This document shows positions 112 to 59,724 of a DNA stretch of 64,000 nt, one piece after another. The notes under the pieces are model-generated. The model was not told the origin of the DNA, did no database searches, and was given only the letters and a program-made list of their open reading frames with translations. The stretch is from sequence record LC819005.1; one strand, given 5' to 3'. Each line of letters begins with the position of its first letter. Position 1 is the first letter of the stretch. The position numbers were made by a program, and so were the translations under genes.

Positions 112-129
112 GTAATATGTGCTCAGCAG
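112..129 (-). promoter_or_regulatory. Putative early (virion RNAP) promoter, reading leftwards out of the window
   Basis: Minus strand CTGCTGAGCACATATTAC; matches the motif at 37760, 44786, 54841 and 57700, and the TATTAC-type phiKZ early promoter. Confidence 0.45.
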
Positions 130-5856: not shown

Positions 5857-6702
5857 ATGAAGACTCTTCATATCGAAGAACCCACAGGGCTGCTGGCGCT
5901 GGAAGCGCTGAACTCCACAGTCGCTCTGGAAGCCTTTTCTTTGCGCGCGGTTGCTAACCGTGCCGCGGACATCATCCCCAACCTCGCACACGCTTTCAGC
6001 GAGGTGCTGGCCACCAGCAAGAACGACAAGTATGACCTGCGTCCGCTGTCGATCAACCTCACGGTGCTCAACAAGGCGCTGAAGGCGGCGAACTACCTCG
6101 AAGTGGGCCGCCTGAACGTGTTTGTGCCGCAAGGCTTCGCCGGGAATTTCAAGGAATACCTGGGCGTGCTCGGCGTGGCGCTGAATTTCACGAACAGCAT
6201 CCAGGAACGCATGACGCGTTTCAACCAACTGGTCTCGGCACTGATCACCGATCGCAACAGCCGCAATTCGACGCAAGACCTGTCGACTGCTGGCTCCAGC
6301 ATGGAACGTGAGCGCGAAGGCATCCGCTTGCAGCTGGAGAAGTTCACCAAGGCTGGCTCGCGCTCGGACCGCGCGACGCTGCAATCGGTCTACGCCTCGC
6401 TGGGTGAAGTCACCGAGTGTGCGTTCATCGCTGCAGAACTCGTCTCGAAAGCCAATGAAGTCTCGCTGGTCGAAGTCGAGAAGATGACGCAGGACGCTTC
6501 CGAACTGCTCAAGGCACTCGGCGAGCAAGCGATGCAAGGCAAGGCAGAACTCTCGCCCGAAGCGTACAAGAGCCTGAGCTCGGCGACCCTGACGATGGCG
6601 CGCGACGTTGAACTGCATGCGTTGCTGATGTTCTCGACCTGGCAAGTCAAGAAGGCGGTGGAAAACACCAGCGAAGTCCTGATCCAGGCACTGCGCTACT
6701 GA
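5857..6702 (+). CDS. Virion head/inner-body protein (phiKZ gp153-like) with prohead-protease sites
   Basis: N-terminal ALE motifs (LLALEALNSTVALEAF) match the S/A/G-x-E cleavage rule. RBS AAGGGA before ATG at 5857. Confidence 0.7.
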   Translation: MKTLHIEEPTGLLALEALNSTVALEAFSLRAVANRAADIIPNLAHAFSEVLATSKNDKYDLRPLSINLTVLNKALKAANYLEVGRLNVFVPQGFAGNFKEYLGVLGVALNFTNSIQERMTRFNQLVSALITDRNSRNSTQDLSTAGSSMEREREGIRLQLEKFTKAGSRSDRATLQSVYASLGEVTECAFIAAELVSKANEVSLVEVEKMTQDASELLKALGEQAMQGKAELSPEAYKSLSSATLTMARDVELHALLMFSTWQVKKAVENTSEVLIQALRY

Positions 6703-37759: not shown

Positions 37760-37778
37760 GTAATATGTTGCTGATGAA
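37760..37778 (-). promoter_or_regulatory. Putative early promoter for the gp122-like/nvRNAP operon
   Basis: Minus strand TTCATCAGCAACATATTAC, preceded by an AT-rich tract. Confidence 0.6.
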
Positions 37779-52687: not shown

Positions 52688-53092
52688 TTACCACCAGCGC
52701 GCCATCACGAAAGCCGCGAAGCATTCGAGCGAGTCGAACAGCTCCGGCTCCTCCTCACGGGTGTCGTTGTAGAACAACTCACCCCAGATGGGGAAGCTGT
52801 GCAACGAACCCGGGCGGAGCTCATGAACGATCGTGCACCCGTACAGCTGGGCCATGATCGTGCTCTCAGTGCGGTACTCCCACTTGAGCGTTTTCATGAG
52901 CTGCGAGAGCGCCGTACCTTCGCCACGTCGCGGATCATTCTCCGGACGACGGCTCAGGTAGATCTCGGCGGCTTCATGATCGCGGCAGTAATCCACCGCG
53001 GTCTTGCCCTTGATCTTCTCGCTGCGCTCCGCATACAGGCGGGCGACTTCAGCGTTGATCTCGGGGGAATACAGATCCCGATTCTTTTCCAT
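52688..53092 (-). CDS. Hypothetical protein (134 aa)
   Basis: AGGAG RBS before ATG at 53092. Confidence 0.7.
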   Translation of the reverse strand: MEKNRDLYSPEINAEVARLYAERSEKIKGKTAVDYCRDHEAAEIYLSRRPENDPRRGEGTALSQLMKTLKWEYRTESTIMAQLYGCTIVHELRPGSLHSFPIWGELFYNDTREEEPELFDSLECFAAFVMARWW

Positions 53093-53093
53093 C

Positions 53094-53351
53094 TCAATCT
53101 CCTGGATTGTCCATTGCGTTGCGAGCCTGCGTAACACTACGCTCAACTCGTTCTTCGAGACCCTCAGCTTCGTACAAGACGAACTCGGTCGGCTTGTAGT
53201 CAGAGGGCATGCCATCGATCGTCTTCAGGAAGTTCTTAGCCAAGCTCAGACTGCTGTCTGCCCAGCGTCGCTTGTCTTGCGACATCTTGGAGCGCGGCAA
53301 CACGTCTTCCAACTCAGCCACCAAGGACCGTAAGTAATCGAACTTGCTCAC
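53094..53351 (-). CDS. Hypothetical protein
   Basis: 85 aa, GGAGG RBS, GTG start, coupled to its neighbours. Confidence 0.65.
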   Translation of the reverse strand: MSKFDYLRSLVAELEDVLPRSKMSQDKRRWADSSLSLAKNFLKTIDGMPSDYKPTEFVLYEAEGLEERVERSVTQARNAMDNPGD

Positions 53352-53596
53352 AGGTCATCCTCCAAGATCCACCGGGTAACTTGCTCATTCAGAGCAATGC
53401 CTTCCAGCATGTGAATACGATCATGAGCATCGTAGCTCTTGAAGAACAGGACGATCTCGTCACGCAGCTTGCAGTAGCTGCGGAACAGATCTTCGGTGAG
53501 CGTGTCGTTGTGAATGTGCGTGCACATCACGTCATCGATACGCTCCAGCATGCTGAGCTTCAAAGTTTCAGCATCCGACAGAAGTTGCTCCGCCAT
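53348..53596 (-). CDS. Hypothetical protein
   Basis: 82 aa, GGAGG RBS. Confidence 0.65.
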   Translation of the reverse strand: MAEQLLSDAETLKLSMLERIDDVMCTHIHNDTLTEDLFRSYCKLRDEIVLFFKSYDAHDRIHMLEGIALNEQVTRWILEDDL

Positions 53597-53599
53597 GAC

Positions 53600-53980
53600 T
53601 CAAGCCTCCTTGCCCGAACGCAGACCGGTGAAACGGAAGTGGTACTGGCGTTGACCACCAATCTCACTGAAGTACAGCACGTAGATGTTCGACTCCGTGA
53701 TGTTGTCACAGTAGTACACCGTGACTTCCCAGTTCTTGATGAACGTGGCGAAGTCGCTGTAGGCCAGCTCGATCACGTCGCCAACTGCTTCGCGCATCAG
53801 CATGCCTTCCTGGTCGACTGCCACCGTGCCGGTGTAGTCGATACGATCCTGCAGTTGTTGCAGGACTTCATTCAGCACCGTGATACCGAAGTGACCGTTG
53901 ATGATGGTCTTCTTATTGGTCAGGTACTTGCGCTTGTTAGCTTCGATGAGCTTAGCGGCGGCGGAGAGAACTTTACCCAT
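53600..53980 (-). CDS. Hypothetical protein
   Basis: 126 aa, TAAGGAG RBS. Confidence 0.7.
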   Translation of the reverse strand: MGKVLSAAAKLIEANKRKYLTNKKTIINGHFGITVLNEVLQQLQDRIDYTGTVAVDQEGMLMREAVGDVIELAYSDFATFIKNWEVTVYYCDNITESNIYVLYFSEIGGQRQYHFRFTGLRSGKEA

Positions 53981-54018
53981 GGTGATACTCCTTATTTAGA
54001 ATTGGAATGGTAATACGG

Positions 54019-54258
54019 TTAAGCGACTTTCTTGATAACGAGGAACTGCTCGTAGTTGACCGGGTCATCCGGATCATCCACGTAGCTGCGTGTGCGCAGG
54101 CTGACCGACTCGATGCTGAGATGTTCCAGCACCAGGCACTCACCCCACTTCTCGTTACACAACGTCAGGATTGAAGCCATGGTTCGATACTCGCCTGTCG
54201 AGAGAAGATACATTTCGGTATCCGTATCAACCGGCTGTTCCACTGTCCACTGAGACAT
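54019..54258 (-). CDS. Hypothetical protein (79 aa)
   Basis: AAAGGAAA RBS before ATG at 54258. Confidence 0.65.
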   Translation of the reverse strand: MSQWTVEQPVDTDTEMYLLSTGEYRTMASILTLCNEKWGECLVLEHLSIESVSLRTRSYVDDPDDPVNYEQFLVIKKVA

Positions 54259-54268
54259 GGTGTTTCCT

Positions 54269-54703
54269 TTATTGTTCAGCACGAATCACGAACGAAGCCT
54301 TACCGACTTTCGTTCCGCGATCGCAGAATTGCAATTCGAAGAAATCCGTGTTCTTTACATCGCCGTCAAAGAAGAGCCAGGCGTCTGGTTCTTCCCGATC
54401 ATTCGCTACTGCAATGGCTGCGGTCAGCGTGGTCATGAACCGCGCATCCGCTTTGGTAATCTTGGTTACTGCTTCCGGTGACGCTCCAGTCATCTGGAGT
54501 TTGTTCGTCCGGATACTGCACCAGAAGGAAATCATCTGGACGACGCTCTTGTGTTCTGGCGTCAGCTTCACACACTGCAGGTCACGTGTCTTCGCCGGTT
54601 TCAGGCTAACACGGTGACCACTTGCGCTCGCAAAGCTAGCCAGCGCATGGCCTGCCAAGAACTTGGCGGTGTTGCCCGTCAAGGCGTTGAACAAGTAACC
54701 CAT
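54269..54703 (-). CDS. Hypothetical protein
   Basis: 144 aa, GGAG RBS. Confidence 0.7.
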   Translation of the reverse strand: MGYLFNALTGNTAKFLAGHALASFASASGHRVSLKPAKTRDLQCVKLTPEHKSVVQMISFWCSIRTNKLQMTGASPEAVTKITKADARFMTTLTAAIAVANDREEPDAWLFFDGDVKNTDFFELQFCDRGTKVGKASFVIRAEQ

Positions 54704-54729
54704 GATTTACTCCAAAGAAAAAATCCAGC

Positions 54730-54840
54730 GAAAAGAACGGGGAAGAGCTTTCGCCCTTCCCCGTAAAAGTGCCTAGCCCATTCGGGCTACGCTCACGAGA
54801 AAGCAGCCTAAGTAGCCATATGGTTACATTAGTTCAAGTG
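54730..54840 (-). ncRNA. Candidate ~100-nt small RNA or attenuator leader
   Basis: Starts at a promoter motif; hairpin TAGCCC-gaat-GGGCTA, then terminator ACGGGGAAG...CTTCCCCGT plus TCTTTT. Confidence 0.4.
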
Positions 54841-54858
54841 GTGATATGTGGTTGAAAC
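54841..54858 (-). promoter_or_regulatory. Putative early promoter
   Basis: Minus strand GTTTCAACCACATATCAC. Confidence 0.65.
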
Positions 54859-54878
54859 TTTTTTCGTTTGAATCGTAG

Positions 54879-54923
54879 CGGCATAGGAGCGAGAGGAGGC
54901 GCAATGCCTCCTCTCGCTTATGC
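54879..54923. terminator. Terminator of the NTase operon
   Basis: GCGAGAGGAGGC-gcaat-GCCTCCTCTCGC with CGGCATAG on the left. Confidence 0.85.
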
Positions 54924-55690
54924 TACTGAGTTGTTGCAGTTGCTTCCTTGCGGGCGAAATACACGTGATGCGCTGTTTCCGTCGGATTGCGATCCTTGAT
55001 GCTCGCTACCATCCGTACCAGAATCTGCGGCGCTGTCGACATGTTCTTGCCAGCATTCTCCGATACATCGATCACAAACGACAATACCGTGCGGATCGAG
55101 CCTGTCGTCGTACGTTGACGGCAGTGATCAATCAGGTATTTGTTGTTGTGGTCCATGCAGTGGTAGATGTACAGCGCCAACTGCTCCAAGCTGTCGTTCA
55201 TACACGCCCAGCCGTCTTGCGCCATGACTTCAACCATCTCCTTGGTGAGCATGCTGATCGCGTTGTGATCCAGGTCGATCTTCTTCAACTCATGCCAGCG
55301 GTTCTTGTCGTAGCCGCAGATACTGCTCACCGTGCGTAGCCCCGTTTCGCCTTCTGGTCCGTAGAACACCGTAGTGATCAGGTTCAATCGCACCGGGCCC
55401 TTGCGTACGTTAGAAAGCCGCCGCATCTGGTTCAGGATCGCGATGATCGAGCTTTCACGATCCTGAGGCTCAGCAAGCGCAGACACGTACGACGTCAGAT
55501 CCGTAAAGGGGATGGGTTGCGTGGCAACTTCTTCTTCCTCCGAAGCAGGCTCTTTCAGAACCGGTTCTTTAGCTTTACCCTTCTCGGGCAACGGTTGTGC
55601 ACGATCGGGTAGGATGTAACCTGCCAGGAACAGGAACATGTAGCCAAAGAACAGGCGGACGTAATGGACTACGAGCTTGAGGGCTTTCAT
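54923..55690 (-). CDS. N-terminally membrane-anchored hypothetical protein
   Basis: 255 aa; hydrophobic N-terminus VVHYVRLFFGYMFLFLAGYIL; 4-bp overlap with the NTase-B stop; GGAGG RBS. Confidence 0.75.
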   Translation of the reverse strand: MKALKLVVHYVRLFFGYMFLFLAGYILPDRAQPLPEKGKAKEPVLKEPASEEEEVATQPIPFTDLTSYVSALAEPQDRESSIIAILNQMRRLSNVRKGPVRLNLITTVFYGPEGETGLRTVSSICGYDKNRWHELKKIDLDHNAISMLTKEMVEVMAQDGWACMNDSLEQLALYIYHCMDHNNKYLIDHCRQRTTTGSIRTVLSFVIDVSENAGKNMSTAPQILVRMVASIKDRNPTETAHHVYFARKEATATTQ

Positions 55691-56646
55691 TTTCCTCCTT
55701 CGAGCAACATGTCGGCGAAGTAGTGATTCAACCTATTCGCGTGTTGGAGATAGACGTCGATGCTACGATCCATCGGCGACGCCTTGATCGGGCGCTTCAG
55801 GATCTGCGGCACGAGCCGGTCGATCACTTCGATGATCTTGCCGTGCCAGTAGACGTGGCCCCGCTTGAACAATCCGTCATGCAGATGCGGGATCAGATTG
55901 CGTGCCATGAATCTGACATCGCAGTCGAGCGCCACTTCGTCGATATAGCCTTCCATCAACTCAGACAACGAAAGCGTGTTGCTGTAAAGCAGTTCTCGCG
56001 CGTAGCGATTGCTGGTGGCTGCCCATGCCAGAAACAGCCGATAAAGGCCATCCGTGATTTCCGAATGCTTTGGCGCTTCCTGCACCACACCAGCCTTGAC
56101 GTCCTTCAACTGCAACATCACCCGCTTGGCACGACTCGCGCAGCTATGACGCAACTTCTCCGGATCGTAGGTGGCCTTGGCGAACTCGCCGATCATCATG
56201 AACAGCGCGTCCAGGTCACCGCCAATCTTCAACACTCGGTTGTCGTGAGCGATGCGGAAATCCAGATTGCCCTTGCCGATCTCCTGCGTCCAGTGATCTA
56301 GACTTACGAAGTTCAGCTGCACTTCACGCGTCTCCAGCACAGTGTGGTCTTTTTCCCGACTGACCACCGTGAGCGTTACCTGAGGCGGCATTGCGTCTTC
56401 GCGCGCCACCTGTTTCGTATCCACGTTCAGGAGTTTGGCGTACTGCGACACCGGCCCGACGTAGATGACGTAGAAGTCGAGATCCGATTCTTCACTTGCA
56501 CAGCCCTTGGCTTGTGAGCCAAAAAGACCGGCATAAAGCGGTCGGATGTTGTGCTGCACCGCGAACTCGTCGATGAAGGTTTTGACATTCGGCAGCAGTC
56601 GTTTGCCAAACTTCTCGTCGAACATTCCCCGTGTAAACGTGGCCAT
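55687..56646 (-). CDS. RlaP-like (PF10127-type) pol-beta nucleotidyltransferase B
   Basis: LYAGLFGSQAKGCASEESDLDFYVIY and KGN motif; GAGGA RBS before ATG at 56646. Confidence 0.8.
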   Translation of the reverse strand: MATFTRGMFDEKFGKRLLPNVKTFIDEFAVQHNIRPLYAGLFGSQAKGCASEESDLDFYVIYVGPVSQYAKLLNVDTKQVAREDAMPPQVTLTVVSREKDHTVLETREVQLNFVSLDHWTQEIGKGNLDFRIAHDNRVLKIGGDLDALFMMIGEFAKATYDPEKLRHSCASRAKRVMLQLKDVKAGVVQEAPKHSEITDGLYRLFLAWAATSNRYARELLYSNTLSLSELMEGYIDEVALDCDVRFMARNLIPHLHDGLFKRGHVYWHGKIIEVIDRLVPQILKRPIKASPMDRSIDVYLQHANRLNHYFADMLLEGGK

Positions 56647-56704
56647 ACTTTCCTCTGTATTGTTCAAATGGTACTGCGGGCCATCCGAAGATGGCCCTTG
56701 CCGC

Positions 56705-57646
56705 TTATGCCGCGAGCAGTTCTTGCTTGTTGGTGTTGATCAGTTTGCCTTGACCCGAACGATCGTCTTCGTGGTCGATCAGTTCCGAATAGAGGTCGAT
56801 CATCTCGCGCGTTTCTTCACGCGTGTTCGGATACTGCTGCGGATTGGCGCGCAGATACGTCGTGGCTTCCTTGAGCACCGCAACCGAGAACGCTTTCAAC
56901 AGCGATTCGGATTCGCTCGGAATACCTGTCGGCATATCGAACGGACTGCGTTCGGTGCGAGCACGGATGACACCGGTGACTTCCTTGCGGAAACCACTCG
57001 GGAAATCCGCTTCCCACTTGCCGCGGTTCATTTCGATCAGTTCCTGGATCGTGCGGCAGTGCTGTTTGTCGCCATCCAGGTACGCGAGCAGACGATGCGC
57101 TGACCACAGCGTGCCGAGGAACGTGCGCTCTTGCTTGTACTCGCGCCCGTGCGATTCGATCTGCTGGAGCGTGCGCAGGTTGTTCGTCATGTGCTCGCCG
57201 CAGCGGTGCACCAGATTCGAGACGCTGAAGTAATCCTGGGCGACCGAGTCGAACAGGAACTTCACGTGCGCGTTTTCCTTGGCGAAACATTCGTACGCCA
57301 TCAGCGAGAACGTGCTTGCGTTCATAATCCCGCGCAACAGCGAGCGCATATCCAGCAACGACACCATGATCTGCCAACCAAGCTCACGCGACATCTGCGT
57401 GGAGAGCTTGGCGAGCTTCTCACGACGGTCATCCAACGTGCCTTCGAAGATCGGCGCATTGGACATGTTGATGTAGTCCGAGACGGGACGGTTCAGCAGG
57501 AAGCAGATGTCCGTGTCGGAGTTGGGGTCATTGAATCCCCGGAGAATCGATCCGTGAATTGCAGATGCCGTCACTTCCAGCCCCAAGTGACGGGATACCA
57601 GCGCCGTAGCTTCAGCGAGACGCTGCTTTTTGATTTGTTCGTGCAT
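56705..57646 (-). CDS. RlaP-like (PF10127-type) pol-beta nucleotidyltransferase A
   Basis: AIHGSILRGFNDPNSDTDICFLLNRPVSDYI; GAGGA RBS before ATG at 57646. Confidence 0.82.
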   Translation of the reverse strand: MHEQIKKQRLAEATALVSRHLGLEVTASAIHGSILRGFNDPNSDTDICFLLNRPVSDYINMSNAPIFEGTLDDRREKLAKLSTQMSRELGWQIMVSLLDMRSLLRGIMNASTFSLMAYECFAKENAHVKFLFDSVAQDYFSVSNLVHRCGEHMTNNLRTLQQIESHGREYKQERTFLGTLWSAHRLLAYLDGDKQHCRTIQELIEMNRGKWEADFPSGFRKEVTGVIRARTERSPFDMPTGIPSESESLLKAFSVAVLKEATTYLRANPQQYPNTREETREMIDLYSELIDHEDDRSGQGKLINTNKQELLAA

Positions 57647-57699
57647 TTTGGTGTCCTCGATGTGGTAAATTGGCAATAGACCTAGATCCATTCTCAGTA

Positions 57700-57717
57700 G
57701 TGATATGTGCCTGAAAC
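57700..57717 (-). promoter_or_regulatory. Putative early promoter for the NTase operon
   Basis: Minus strand GTTTCAGGCACATATCAC; 16/18 identical to the 54841 motif. Confidence 0.65.
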
Positions 57718-57800
57718 TAAGTCCAGATCACCTATCCAAGCCATTTGCTCACAGTAAGGACACCCGACTGTATTTTCTAATTGCTTACAACTATCCTTGT

Positions 57801-58208
57801 TCAGAAGTAAATCTGAACGGTGTGCGCCGCCGCTTCACGATGCATCGTATCCGTGTTGTGCAGGCGCATAGAGACGACGCCGTGGCAACCCTTAGCGTTG
57901 TCCTTCGCCCACTGGCTCGTGACCTTCTCGAAGCCCGCATACGTGCAGAACCACAAACGTTCGTCAGTGCCTCGTACGGTCTTGATCAGACCCTTGGTGT
58001 AAAAGTCTTCGGAGGTCACGACGTCGAAGATGTCACTTACCTCGTCACTCATCGCCGGATTCGTGTCGCCCCAGTAGGCCAACAGAATTGCCGTGATCAG
58101 ACGCATGTTATCGCGCAGTTCCGCTTGGGAGCCCGCGTAGCCCACGCCGTGTAACAGCGCGCGGGTGTAGATCTTGTTGTTTGGTGTTACCAGATGCAGA
58201 AAAGCCAT
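57801..58208 (-). CDS. Hypothetical protein
   Basis: 135-aa ORF, ATG start. Confidence 0.65.
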   Translation of the reverse strand: MAFLHLVTPNNKIYTRALLHGVGYAGSQAELRDNMRLITAILLAYWGDTNPAMSDEVSDIFDVVTSEDFYTKGLIKTVRGTDERLWFCTYAGFEKVTSQWAKDNAKGCHGVVSMRLHNTDTMHREAAAHTVQIYF

Positions 58209-58238
58209 GAGAATCCCCGATGATTGACTTAGGTCAAT

Positions 58239-58670
58239 TCATGGACGATCTTTGTAATTCTCCACTTCCCACGGTCGCCAGCAACGCACTCCCTGAGAAC
58301 GTTTGTATTCCATGTCTGTGCGACGCTTTATTTCTTTCAGACAGATCGCTCGCACACGCTGTGGAGTTATATCCAGCACTTCGGCTATAGCTCGGTAGTT
58401 GTAACCACGCACATTGTGCTGAACCAAGATATGGCCGAACAGCTGTGCGATATAATGCACACGCTTTTGCAAGGCGATTTCGTGTCTGAGATCCATCATT
58501 TCGTTACGAGTATCAACGATCCAGTCTTTCTGTGCTTTGGTGAGCAGGTGCGCTAGATCGTTCTCTACGTGTAACAGCTTAGTCATGAACTCATCGTATT
58601 TTGCTAGATGATACTTCCGTCGTTCACGTAGTTGTTCGAATGACATCGGCAGAGGGGTGGCGTCCATCAT
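58239..58670 (-). CDS. Protein with a C-terminal helix-turn-helix (sigma70 region-4-like)
   Basis: GYNYRAIAEVLDITPQRVRAICLKEIKR; TAGGAG RBS. Confidence 0.65.
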   Translation of the reverse strand: MMDATPLPMSFEQLRERRKYHLAKYDEFMTKLLHVENDLAHLLTKAQKDWIVDTRNEMMDLRHEIALQKRVHYIAQLFGHILVQHNVRGYNYRAIAEVLDITPQRVRAICLKEIKRRTDMEYKRSQGVRCWRPWEVENYKDRP

Positions 58671-58757
58671 GTCTCCTAAATTGGGGGTGTGATAAATAAC
58701 CCTCGGAGTAAGAAGTTGACAGCATAAAAGCCGGTTTCCCGGCTCCGATGCTTTATC

Positions 58758-58827
58758 TGCGTAGGATGGGAATCGAACCCACTCTTTCGGGTCGTAACCG
58801 ACGTTATGCCAATCTACTACCTGACGC
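58758..58827 (-). tRNA. tRNA-Arg(ACG), atypical, possibly a pseudo-tRNA
   Basis: T arm GTGGG-TTCGATT-CCCAT; anticodon arm TCGG-TTACGAC-CCGA; D-loop TTGG; acceptor GCGT(C)AGG/CCTACGC with a bulge; no encoded CCA. Confidence 0.7.
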
Positions 58828-59001
58828 AGTTACAACGGACGTTACCGGCATTTCCAACCCCGAGCTGATACTGAGACCCTAGGTTAAGAAAGTAACTAGC
58901 AGCGGAATTACTGCTACAAAATGCAATGACGGTGTATTAAAACAAATTACTATAGACAAGAGGTGTACTCTCTACCACCCTGACTTTTTATAAGGTCGTT
59001 T

Positions 59002-59724
59002 ATGTTCGAACTGCTTCTCTCAACCAGATTGGTCGCTAGCGGTCCCGACCGCAGTATGACGTTTCTGGGGGAAGTTGCTGCAGCTGATTTTATTGCAGGC
59101 GATGCTTTGGCTGCCGCGGTGGGTGTGTCTTTTGGCGTAGCAACCAATACGACCACCAACTGGCTCCGCTTTCTTTATGGGGGCAAGACGCTCTACGTTC
59201 CTAAGCTAGCGATACGGACTACCAATGGTTCAAACAGTGTTACGTGGGGTAAGCTTTACACTGCAGGTGTAGTGTATGGTAGTGGTCTTAGTTCTGATCC
59301 AGTGCCGTTGAGTCAGGCTCCTGCTGTCCAGAACGCACGAGTGACAATTGGCGGTCAGGTGTATATCGTTCGTCTTATCAGGGGCGCGCCGGTCAATCCA
59401 CTGCCTGCGTTGACAAATGGTTACGATCCAGCCGTTTGCGTGGGATCGGAATGGAATGATTTATTCTACCCCATTGTCAGCGATCCCAAGATTACGTCAT
59501 ACACCGGACCCATGCAGGCGTCTTATTCCCTAGCGAATCTGGGCTTCACTGGTTCATCGAGTGGCGGTGGTGCTTTTGTCGCCAACACCGTTGGATCAGC
59601 CAATGCTGCGCTAGTGCGCGGCGCCTGGGGTTCTGACACAGCGTGTTTTGCTGGTCAGCTCAATTACGGTTCGTCCGGAGCTCCCTATGGCTGGCGACCC
59701 TGTCTCGAACTGGTGTCGTCGTAA
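59002..59724 (+). CDS. Putative virion protein of the phiKZ-like 'MFELLL' paralogue family
   Basis: WLRFLYGGKTLYVPK, W..LY.AG.VYG, VRLIRG, SEWNDLFY and WRPCLEL recalled from phiKZ-like tail-associated paralogues. Confidence 0.7.
   Translation: MFELLLSTRLVASGPDRSMTFLGEVAAADFIAGDALAAAVGVSFGVATNTTTNWLRFLYGGKTLYVPKLAIRTTNGSNSVTWGKLYTAGVVYGSGLSSDPVPLSQAPAVQNARVTIGGQVYIVRLIRGAPVNPLPALTNGYDPAVCVGSEWNDLFYPIVSDPKITSYTGPMQASYSLANLGFTGSSSGGGAFVANTVGSANAALVRGAWGSDTACFAGQLNYGSSGAPYGWRPCLELVSS

Follow-up and report, generated by a model that had tools for sequence, protein, structure and literature searches.

The window analysed here, a 64,000-nucleotide stretch of sequence record LC819005.1, is part of the genome of Ralstonia phage FLC1-1B (290,008 bp), a phiKZ-related jumbo phage, and contains a cassette of three minus-strand genes, gp116, gp115 and gp114, each annotated in GenBank as 'hypothetical protein'. 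We refer to their products as NTase-A, NTase-B and partner protein C, or simply A, B and C. A and B are nucleotidyltransferases (NTases) of the pol-beta superfamily, and C is an uncharacterised protein for which a new fold is predicted. We found that A and C form the conserved core of the cassette, and that the cassette is restricted to one clade of jumbo phages. The reading that we favour, tentatively and a little short of calling it probable, takes the cassette to be an accessory nucleoside monophosphate (NMP) transferase module with a dedicated partner, belonging to the Ripduovirus/FLC clade of phiKZ-related jumbo phages. The NTase fold and its motifs are known; what appears to be new is the partner C, with its predicted fold, and the unusual make-up of the active site.

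Window positions correspond to positions in the LC819005.1 record minus 62000. The region 54800-57800 is 100% identical to FLC1-1B and 99.3% identical to FLC4-3B, and the three open reading frames (ORFs) match gp116, gp115 and gp114 at 100% identity. FLC1-1B was obtained from leaf-litter compost, and its nearest described relative is the phiKZ-related Ripduovirus RP12 (PMC11530567). A preliminary description of this stretch had reported these ORFs, the GS and DxD motifs of the two NTases and an ATGA overlap at the start of the third gene, and all of them are present in the sequence and in the GenBank match.

Gene neighbourhoods were read in FLC1-1B and 13 further lineages, 14 in all, one of which (L010) is RP12. 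C adjoins an A- or B-type NTase gene in 14/14, so that the outcome which the preliminary description had named as refuting, a third gene unlinked to the NTases in related phages, is not what the relatives show. The order A-B-C is found in L003, L004, L006, L007, L010, L011, L012, L014, L015 and L017, and in L008 and L013 A is followed directly by C, with no match to the B family in the fetched flanks. L016 carries the most distant C homologue examined (E = 7e-12), overlapped by 4 nucleotides by the NTase gene that precedes it, and this gene is A-type (hhalign probability 98.9%, 254 columns). B is absent, then, from three lineages (L008, L013 and L016). Since C stands beside an NTase gene in every lineage and B is missing from three, A and C are the conserved core; and because those three keep A and C without B, the obligate A-B heterodimer implied by an earlier proposal of a heterodimeric NTase pair is unlikely. 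In 8 lineages the start of C and the stop of the NTase gene before it share 4 nucleotides, which suggests translational coupling of C to the NTase gene. Two lineages depart from the usual gene sizes: L015 has an extra ORF of 67 amino acids between A and B (5914-6117), and B of L017 (3793-5004) has 403 amino acids, approximately 80 residues above the usual length.

The A family comprises 27 cluster relatives with 51-89% identity and the B family 13 relatives with 31-54% identity. An exhaustive profile search of 1.84 billion proteins gave 31 cluster representatives of C at E <= 0.001, and C is consequently not a strict ORFan, as it had been called. Most A relatives were obtained by exact-protein look-ups rather than by pattern scans, which yielded 2 loci from viral contigs and a single one from metagenome contigs, and no locus from 185,579 reference genomes. 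Among annotated phages only FLC1-1B, FLC4-3B, RP12 and RP31 have A, B and C, and the family was not found in RSL2/RSF1-type or other annotated phages; the distribution of the cassette is narrow. Furthermore, the RP31 orthologues (ORF115, 114 and 113) do not appear in the mass-spectrometry table of the RP31 virion, in keeping with an intracellular and not a structural role.

A carries the motifs H31-G32-S33 and D44-T45-D46-I, in which the G, the S and both D are invariant in 27/27 sequences. It passes the Pfam NTP_transf_2 model (28 bits against a cut-off of 21; phrog_34134), stays under the cut-off of RlaP (PF10127; 17.5 bits against 23) and lies outside the curated ANT families, whose NCBIfam models give 12-16 bits against cut-offs of 193-505. 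In the AlphaFold (AF2) model, built from a 27-sequence alignment (predicted local distance difference test, pLDDT, 84.8; predicted template modelling score, pTM, 0.80), helix 2-21, strands 24-31 and 45-52, helix 71-89, strand 93-99 and helix 100-108 can be followed, giving a three-stranded NTase core and a helical domain of about 200 residues, approximately residues 100-300. The closest structures in the PDB according to Foldseek are ANT(4')-Ia/KNTase, ANT(9) and ANT(3'')(9)/AadA, with probabilities of 0.98-1.00 and TM-scores of 0.37-0.54 (E = 3.4e-3 for ANT(4')-Ia/KNTase; TM-scores 0.45/0.54 for ANT(9) and 0.45/0.52 for ANT(3'')(9)/AadA), followed by weaker matches to the N-terminal domain of glutamine synthetase adenylyltransferase, HalB, MntA, a HEPN toxin (with the C-terminal part) and Tam41. 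PDB chains searched directly with the sequences of A and B gave no meaningful match. On the strength of its model, A is predicted to have the two-domain nucleotidyltransferase architecture of KNTase, LinB, AadA and RlaP while falling in no curated ANT family. Both A and B are mildly acidic, with a median isoelectric point (pI) of ~6.1.

In B the corresponding motifs are F35-G36-S37 and D48-L49-D50-F, again with the G, the S and both D invariant (14/14). B passes the Pfam RlaP model with 27.6 bits against a cut-off of 23, its residues 32-87 falling on profile positions 9-62 of 249 only, and it also matches Polbeta and NTP_transf_2 around residues 32-87 only (phrog_32942); the same stretch matches the MntA model as well. 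The scores for that model, NF047752, are 20.1 bits for A and 25.7 bits for B against a cut-off of 60, and both proteins weakly match small defence candidates of the MNT type. When the two families were compared with hhalign, homology was seen only around the NTase core, with a probability of 35-38%. We regard B as an auxiliary, fast-evolving NTase of MNT/RlaP type, helical in its C-terminal part and inserted between A and C.

C and its 34 family members have no match in Pfam, NCBIfam or PADLOC. The AF2 model, from a 34-sequence alignment (pLDDT 90.3), consists of an N-terminal helix (2-26), a disordered acidic and proline-rich linker (27-64) and a globular domain (65-245) in which two helix-plus-three-strand units form a sheet topped by long helices. 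The only real structural neighbour is the RP12 orthologue. TldE/PmbA and platforms of the MHC class I type came up with TM-scores of 0.16-0.29 and were rejected as topology-level noise. As modelled, C is with confidence a new alpha/beta platform fold specific to the clade. Four residues are invariant in 34/34 sequences, Y68, W132, E151 and G160, of which Y68 lies at the edge of the disordered linker. The hydrophobic core of the N-terminal segment follows K2, K5 and a nearly invariant R12, and the flanks of the helix have median charges of +3 (N-terminal) and 0 (C-terminal).

According to the mechanism that we propose, A would bind NTP-Mg through its GS and DxD motifs and would transfer NMP to an acceptor hydroxyl held between the NTase and helical domains, or between subunits, with a general base supplied from a non-canonical position, as proposed for Glu145 of KNTase. 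C would be the dedicated adaptor, regulator or substrate of A, and its N-terminal helix would probably tether it to the membrane. Transcribed from an early-type promoter, the module would likely serve host takeover or counter-defence. As acceptors, an RNA 3' end and a protein hydroxyl seem to us about equally likely, with a small molecule behind them.

Several observations weigh against this proposal. The fold matches of A have weak E-values (0.003-0.02), and at the sequence level the likeness to characterised enzymes is confined to about 50 residues around GS/DxD; PDB profile searches align residues 9-57 of A only, with E ~0.7-1.9. The N-terminal segment of C is borderline hydrophobic by Kyte-Doolittle hydropathy (KD), with KD19 1.66 and KD 2.08 for the 15-residue core, and the core reaches KD 2.0 in 16/34 family members. 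A membrane anchor, which the preliminary description had taken as given, is consequently plausible, not secure. If the helix were a true N-in anchor, moreover, the domain of C would face the periplasm, away from the cytoplasmic NTases. Finally, the canonical slot of the third catalytic carboxylate appears to be non-acidic: position 94 of A is Met in 25/27 sequences and Asn in 2/27, an ungapped strand match puts Q103 and N105 of B (14/14) in the slot, and A and/or B may for this reason be non-catalytic nucleotide binders.

The position of this slot was derived as follows. Members of the pol-beta NTase superfamily carry three defining motifs, hG[GS] where the second core helix begins, [DE]h[DE]h in strand 2 and h[DE]h in strand 3 next to it (PMC2794190). 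AadA has its strands 2 and 3 in parallel (PMC4631478) and Glu87 as its catalytic base, to which Glu89 of LinB and Asp86 of ANT(2'')-Ia correspond; from the superfamily motif definition and the AadA residue numbering we take Glu87 to lie on strand 3. D44 and D46 of A open strand 2, and the third slot is therefore at the N-terminal part of strand 3, I93-M94-V95. Other acids lie near the slot in the sequence of both proteins. In A these are E88 (27/27), just before beta-3, and D99 (27/27) in L-D99-M at its far end, and R101 is invariant too; in B they are D110 (13/14) and D122 (14/14), with N120 and R124 also invariant. The hhalign alignment of A with B was not used to locate the third carboxylate of B, as it offered competing placements at D110 and D122. 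A base outside beta-3 has a precedent in KNTase, whose proposed base, Glu145, belongs to the helical domain of the second subunit, and the active sites of both KNTase and LinB are built between subunits (PMC4631478). The replacement of the third Asp by Met in A and by Gln in B, as previously described, is plausible as far as the slot itself is concerned, and a loss of the carboxylate is not established, given the other invariant acids nearby. The active sites of A and B are likely to be non-canonical, a catalytic loss being unproven, and the fact that GS and DxD do not vary in either family speaks for nucleotide and metal binding having been retained.

Among other explanations, the one to which we give most weight, while holding it unlikely, is repair of the RlaP type, in which A and/or B would add 1-2 nucleotides to damaged RNA or tRNA 3' ends, the phage RNA ligase would reseal RNAs cut by anticodon nucleases and C would be an accessory factor. 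RlaP shares the NTase-plus-helical build and adds 1-2 NMP to the RNA 3'-OH (PMC12776372), it is common in jumbo phages having RNA ligases (PMC7824862), and B is above the PF10127 gathering score. Furthermore, gp223 of FLC1-1B (PF09414 and an OB domain) is a genuine RNA ligase, with no other RlaP adjoining it, and a tRNA-Arg and four tRNAs lie 1.1 kb and ~7.7 kb upstream of the cassette, respectively. However, the PF10127 match is limited to a generic stretch of the profile and A is under the cut-off; RlaP has three strictly conserved Asp (PMC12776372), whereas the canonical third slot appears to be non-acidic here; the mildly acidic A and B contrast with the positive RNA cleft of RlaP; and the strict link to C would be left unexplained. 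Nor is the ligase close, gp223 being ~85 kb from the cassette, with no RNA ligase among the flanking genes or in the annotation of the 64-kb window; in RP12 an RNA ligase and an RtcB-like gene lie 75-80 kb from the cassette. The earlier label 'RlaP-like' thus suits B by score, over about a fifth of the profile, and does not extend to A. We consider it rather unlikely that the NTase modifies a protein in the manner of MntA-HepT or HalB, acting on C, for example at Tyr68, or on a host protein, so that the NTase-C pair would be a toxin-antitoxin, guard or exclusion module. The start-stop overlap of NTase and partner is as in NTase-containing toxin-antitoxin pairs, the invariant Tyr of C (34/34) sits at the linker edge, MntA, a HEPN toxin and HalB are among the fold neighbours of A, the MntA model and small MNT defence candidates match A and B weakly, and HalB uses a tyrosine of its own to prime synthesis and has a membrane protein under its control (PMC13434031). 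Yet the MntA scores of 20-26 bits are far from the cut-off, C is not HEPN-like and has no HalA-like channels among its top structural matches, and it contains at most one short hydrophobic helix. A more specific combination appears improbable, namely that C would be nucleotidylated or oligonucleotidylated by A, alone or together with B, on the invariant Tyr at the beginning of its platform domain, by means of a base from outside the canonical slot of beta-3, and that the membrane-tethered conjugate would be a switch or decoy aimed at host NTase-based immunity of the MNT-HEPN or Hailong type.

The non-acidic slot (Met/Asn in A, Gln/Asn in B) would also suit pseudoenzymes, A and/or B being non-catalytic, nucleotide-binding scaffolds or regulators of C, and B evolves fast and has been lost three times. 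We judge this decidedly improbable, as GS and DxD are invariant in both proteins, together with D99, E88 and R101 of A and D122, N120 and R124 of B, and carboxylate-poor NTase folds that were judged inactive can be enzymes. MMP37 was judged inactive from its missing carboxylates (PMC2794190). PDB entry 6ig4, a fold neighbour of A, describes Tam41 as a cytidine diphosphate-diacylglycerol (CDP-DAG) synthase. The two cases bear on each other in so far as MMP37 and Tam41 are the same protein, which we take to be so. It is very improbable, in our estimate, that A works as an ANT-type enzyme, adding AMP to inactivate an antiphage or antibacterial metabolite of soil or compost. Its best structural neighbours are all antibiotic nucleotidyltransferases, acidic proteins suit cationic ligands and the phage was isolated from compost (PMC11530567); against this stand the scores of 12-16 bits and TM-scores reported above, the non-acidic residue at the base position of AadA, LinB and ANT(2''), and the unexplained need for C and B. 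Least credible of all is signalling like that of the cyclic oligonucleotide-based antiphage signalling system (CBASS), in which a nucleotide made by the NTase would activate C as a membrane effector, or the cassette would be a decoy for host signals. The preliminary description had seen this layout in the cassette, and the likeness lies in the layout only, an NTase gene beside a gene whose product has a hydrophobic helix: PADLOC gave no match to a CBASS or CD-NTase model, CdnC, CdnE and OAS appear in the fold search at Foldseek probabilities of 0.14-0.21 only, C has a single weak helix and no known effector fold, and the A/B/C family was found in phages only.

The two pol-beta NTase genes and the overlapping third gene constitute a unit with a promoter-like motif at one end and a hairpin at the other, as had been described; the features are listed in the table.

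Features of the A-B-C cassette in the window
Feature	Positions	Strand	Remarks
Promoter-like motif	57700..57716	-	TTTCAGGCACATATCAC, ~54 nt upstream of the A start codon; sequence read
NTase-A, gp116, 313 aa	56705..57646	-	Annotated ATG; conserved core enzyme
Hairpin with TTCG loop	56678..56697	-	Just past the A stop; -18.3 kcal/mol, z = -3.3
NTase-B, gp115	55687..56646	-	Annotated start 56625, likelier start 56646; accessory
Partner protein C, gp114, 255 aa	54923..55690	-	ATGA overlap with B; phrog_32802
Terminator-type 12-bp GC hairpin	54889..54917	-	Directly past the C stop; -32.3 kcal/mol, z = -7.7

The open frame of A extends past the annotated ATG to 57691, a GAGGA Shine-Dalgarno sequence lies 8 nucleotides before the annotated start, and the relatives start at the same place. 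For B, the annotated start has almost no spacing to a purine-rich box, and the ATG at 56646 has a GAGGA box 4 nucleotides upstream and agrees with the two closest relatives, whose N-termini are longer; gp115 as given in GenBank is probably 7 codons too short, and the product would have 319 amino acids. The overlap between B and C was read in the sequence, with GGAGG just upstream of the C start.

The promoter-like motif is where it had been claimed, and its 17-base pattern gives 5 matches in 64 kb against 0.28 expected, a number that no shuffle reached. The exact 9-base cores in the window are all on the minus strand (5/5), and a second exact-core copy, TTTCAACCACATATCAC, occupies 54857..54841 (-), between C and gp113. 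A near-identical word is found upstream of A, at the same place, in 8/12 lineages, and it is repeated after C in nearly all lineages compared. It is similar to the early promoters predicted for phiKZ-like phages and listed for phiKZ, 201phi2-1, OBP and EL (PMC7058600), and agrees with the AT-rich early motif of ~10 nucleotides, centred near -10, that is the rule in jumbo phages having RNA polymerases of their own (PMC7598289). Judged from motif likeness alone, transcription of the cassette is probably early. A sigma-70 promoter scan gave no match, as expected because the phage uses its own RNA polymerases; host RNA polymerase is not needed for complete infection by RP12 and RP31 (PMC5468394). 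The core ACATATTAC also occurs in intergenic DNA at 37760-37776 and 112-120 (-); one of these copies follows the major head protein gene and precedes a possible GTG-start ORF that is unannotated, and the other is ~65 nucleotides upstream of gp50. Upstream of the A promoter word, at 57760-57790 (-), there is a second conserved element, found at the same place in 10 relatives, which consists of a T-run plus ACA and a GGTGTCC-like block, followed in the relatives by TATGA-like bases.

The terminator that the preliminary description placed at 54879 corresponds to a strong hairpin, which runs from 54917 to 54889 and in FLC1-1B is not followed by a T-run; a consensus terminator scan missed it for that reason. 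An equivalent hairpin stands directly 3' of C in 12/12 relatives examined, mostly followed by a short T-run and ATGCC. After the A stop, a hairpin of differing sequence is present in 8 lineages with a spacer, and the one at 56678..56697 may be an attenuator or a 3'-end stabiliser. A further strong hairpin with a T-run (54764..54737, minus strand; -23.6 kcal/mol, z = -5.3) lies ~75 nucleotides past the promoter copy that follows C, gp113 starts only after it (54703), and the relatives have a small conserved hairpin soon after the post-C promoter word; the region 54737-54857 might act as a leader or attenuator or give rise to a short transcript. A terminator signature recurs in the clade (L003-L017; 54889-54917 and 58735-58760 in the window), in which a GC-rich hairpin precedes a short T-run and ATGCC or ATGCT. 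The TATG of these terminator tails has the same four bases as the TATG described as the phiKZ late-promoter element (PMC7598289), and such sites might combine termination with late initiation.

Ten genes flanking the cassette gave no functional match in Pfam and PHROG scans. The genes of the window, nearly all on the minus strand, also include virion, replication and RNA polymerase genes. In the gap between gp118 and gp119, upstream of A, ARAGORN predicts a tRNA-Arg (anticodon ACG; 58757-58828, minus strand), followed by a hairpin and T-run. It reaches 27.2 bits with the Rfam tRNA model against a gathering score of 29, and it is unlisted in the GenBank feature table, which has the four tRNAs further upstream; the FLC1-1B paper reports five. 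An Rfam scan of 53000-59500 gave only this sub-threshold tRNA and a chance U6 match on the A-B hairpin. The adjacent gp119 (59002-59724, plus strand) is a single plus-strand gene within a long minus-strand block and matches PHROGs of virion structural proteins, phrog_16120 (E = 8e-18) and phrog_1062 (E = 3e-37). A gene for a BCS1-like AAA ATPase of ~450 amino acids lies upstream of A at a constant spacing in most of the relatives (L003, L004, L006, L012-L015 and L017), 3-5 kb away; no gene of that size is annotated at the matching place in FLC1-1B, where positions 125264-126303 of the record carry no annotated feature.

Nucleus-forming jumbo phages have hundreds of genes without an assigned role, and the cassette is among the few in this region with a recognisable enzyme; it is also part of the gene content by which the RP12/FLC clade differs from RSL2/RSF1. 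Should A be active without the canonical third carboxylate, the known chemistry of pol-beta NTases would be extended, as it was by KNTase and Tam41, and should C be its substrate or adaptor, the pair would represent a new two-component nucleotidylylation module in the conflict between phage and host. A nucleotide conjugate of C acting as switch or decoy would amount to a phage counter-defence of a new kind, based on a protein fold that is itself new. For annotation of the clade, the early-type promoter word, the terminator of GC hairpin, T-run and ATGCC, the corrected start of gp115 and the unannotated tRNA-Arg may serve as aids.

Compared with known systems, the cassette resembles CBASS only in having an NTase-fold gene beside a gene with a hydrophobic segment, and differs in the TM-scores of ~0.2 with CdnC and CdnE, in giving no effector domain match and in having no accessory CBASS genes. 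With Hailong it shares the two-gene logic of an NTase and a membrane protein, if C is indeed anchored. HalB (9dbj), however, matches A at the level of fold only (probability 0.63-0.69, TM-score 0.30-0.47, E = 0.13-0.19), and HalA forms a tetrameric channel of several helices that bears a crown on the cytoplasmic side (PMC13434031), whereas C has one short helix and an unrelated domain, with no channel among the top 50 PDB matches of its model; furthermore, Hailong is a bacterial defence system and the cassette is phage-only. The resemblance to MntA-HepT lies in the small-NTase signature around GS/DxD and in an NTase gene placed upstream of its partner and overlapping it. A and B are nevertheless three times the size of MntA and score far under its cut-off, and C is modelled as an alpha/beta platform and not as a HEPN RNase, with no HEPN among its matches.

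The RlaP family, common in jumbo phages, shares the NTase-plus-helical build, B is above its Pfam cut-off and the phage has an RNA ligase. The match of B, however, covers the generic N-terminal fifth of the model and does not make it a member of the family; two Asp are invariant here and the third would be outside the canonical slot, the cassette is not beside the ligase and it contains the extra gene C. In architecture the cassette comes closest to KNTase, LinB and AadA. ANT(4')-Ia/KNTase, LinB, AadA and ANT(9) have, like A, an N-terminal GS/DxD NTase domain followed by an up-and-down helical domain, and KNTase and LinB are dimers with active sites made from both subunits (PMC4631478). In contrast to these enzymes, A is ~60 residues longer and has no family-level sequence match to them, it has Met at the beta-3 base position that is occupied by Glu87 in AadA, Glu89 in LinB and Asp86 in ANT(2''), and it is encoded by a phage together with a dedicated partner gene.

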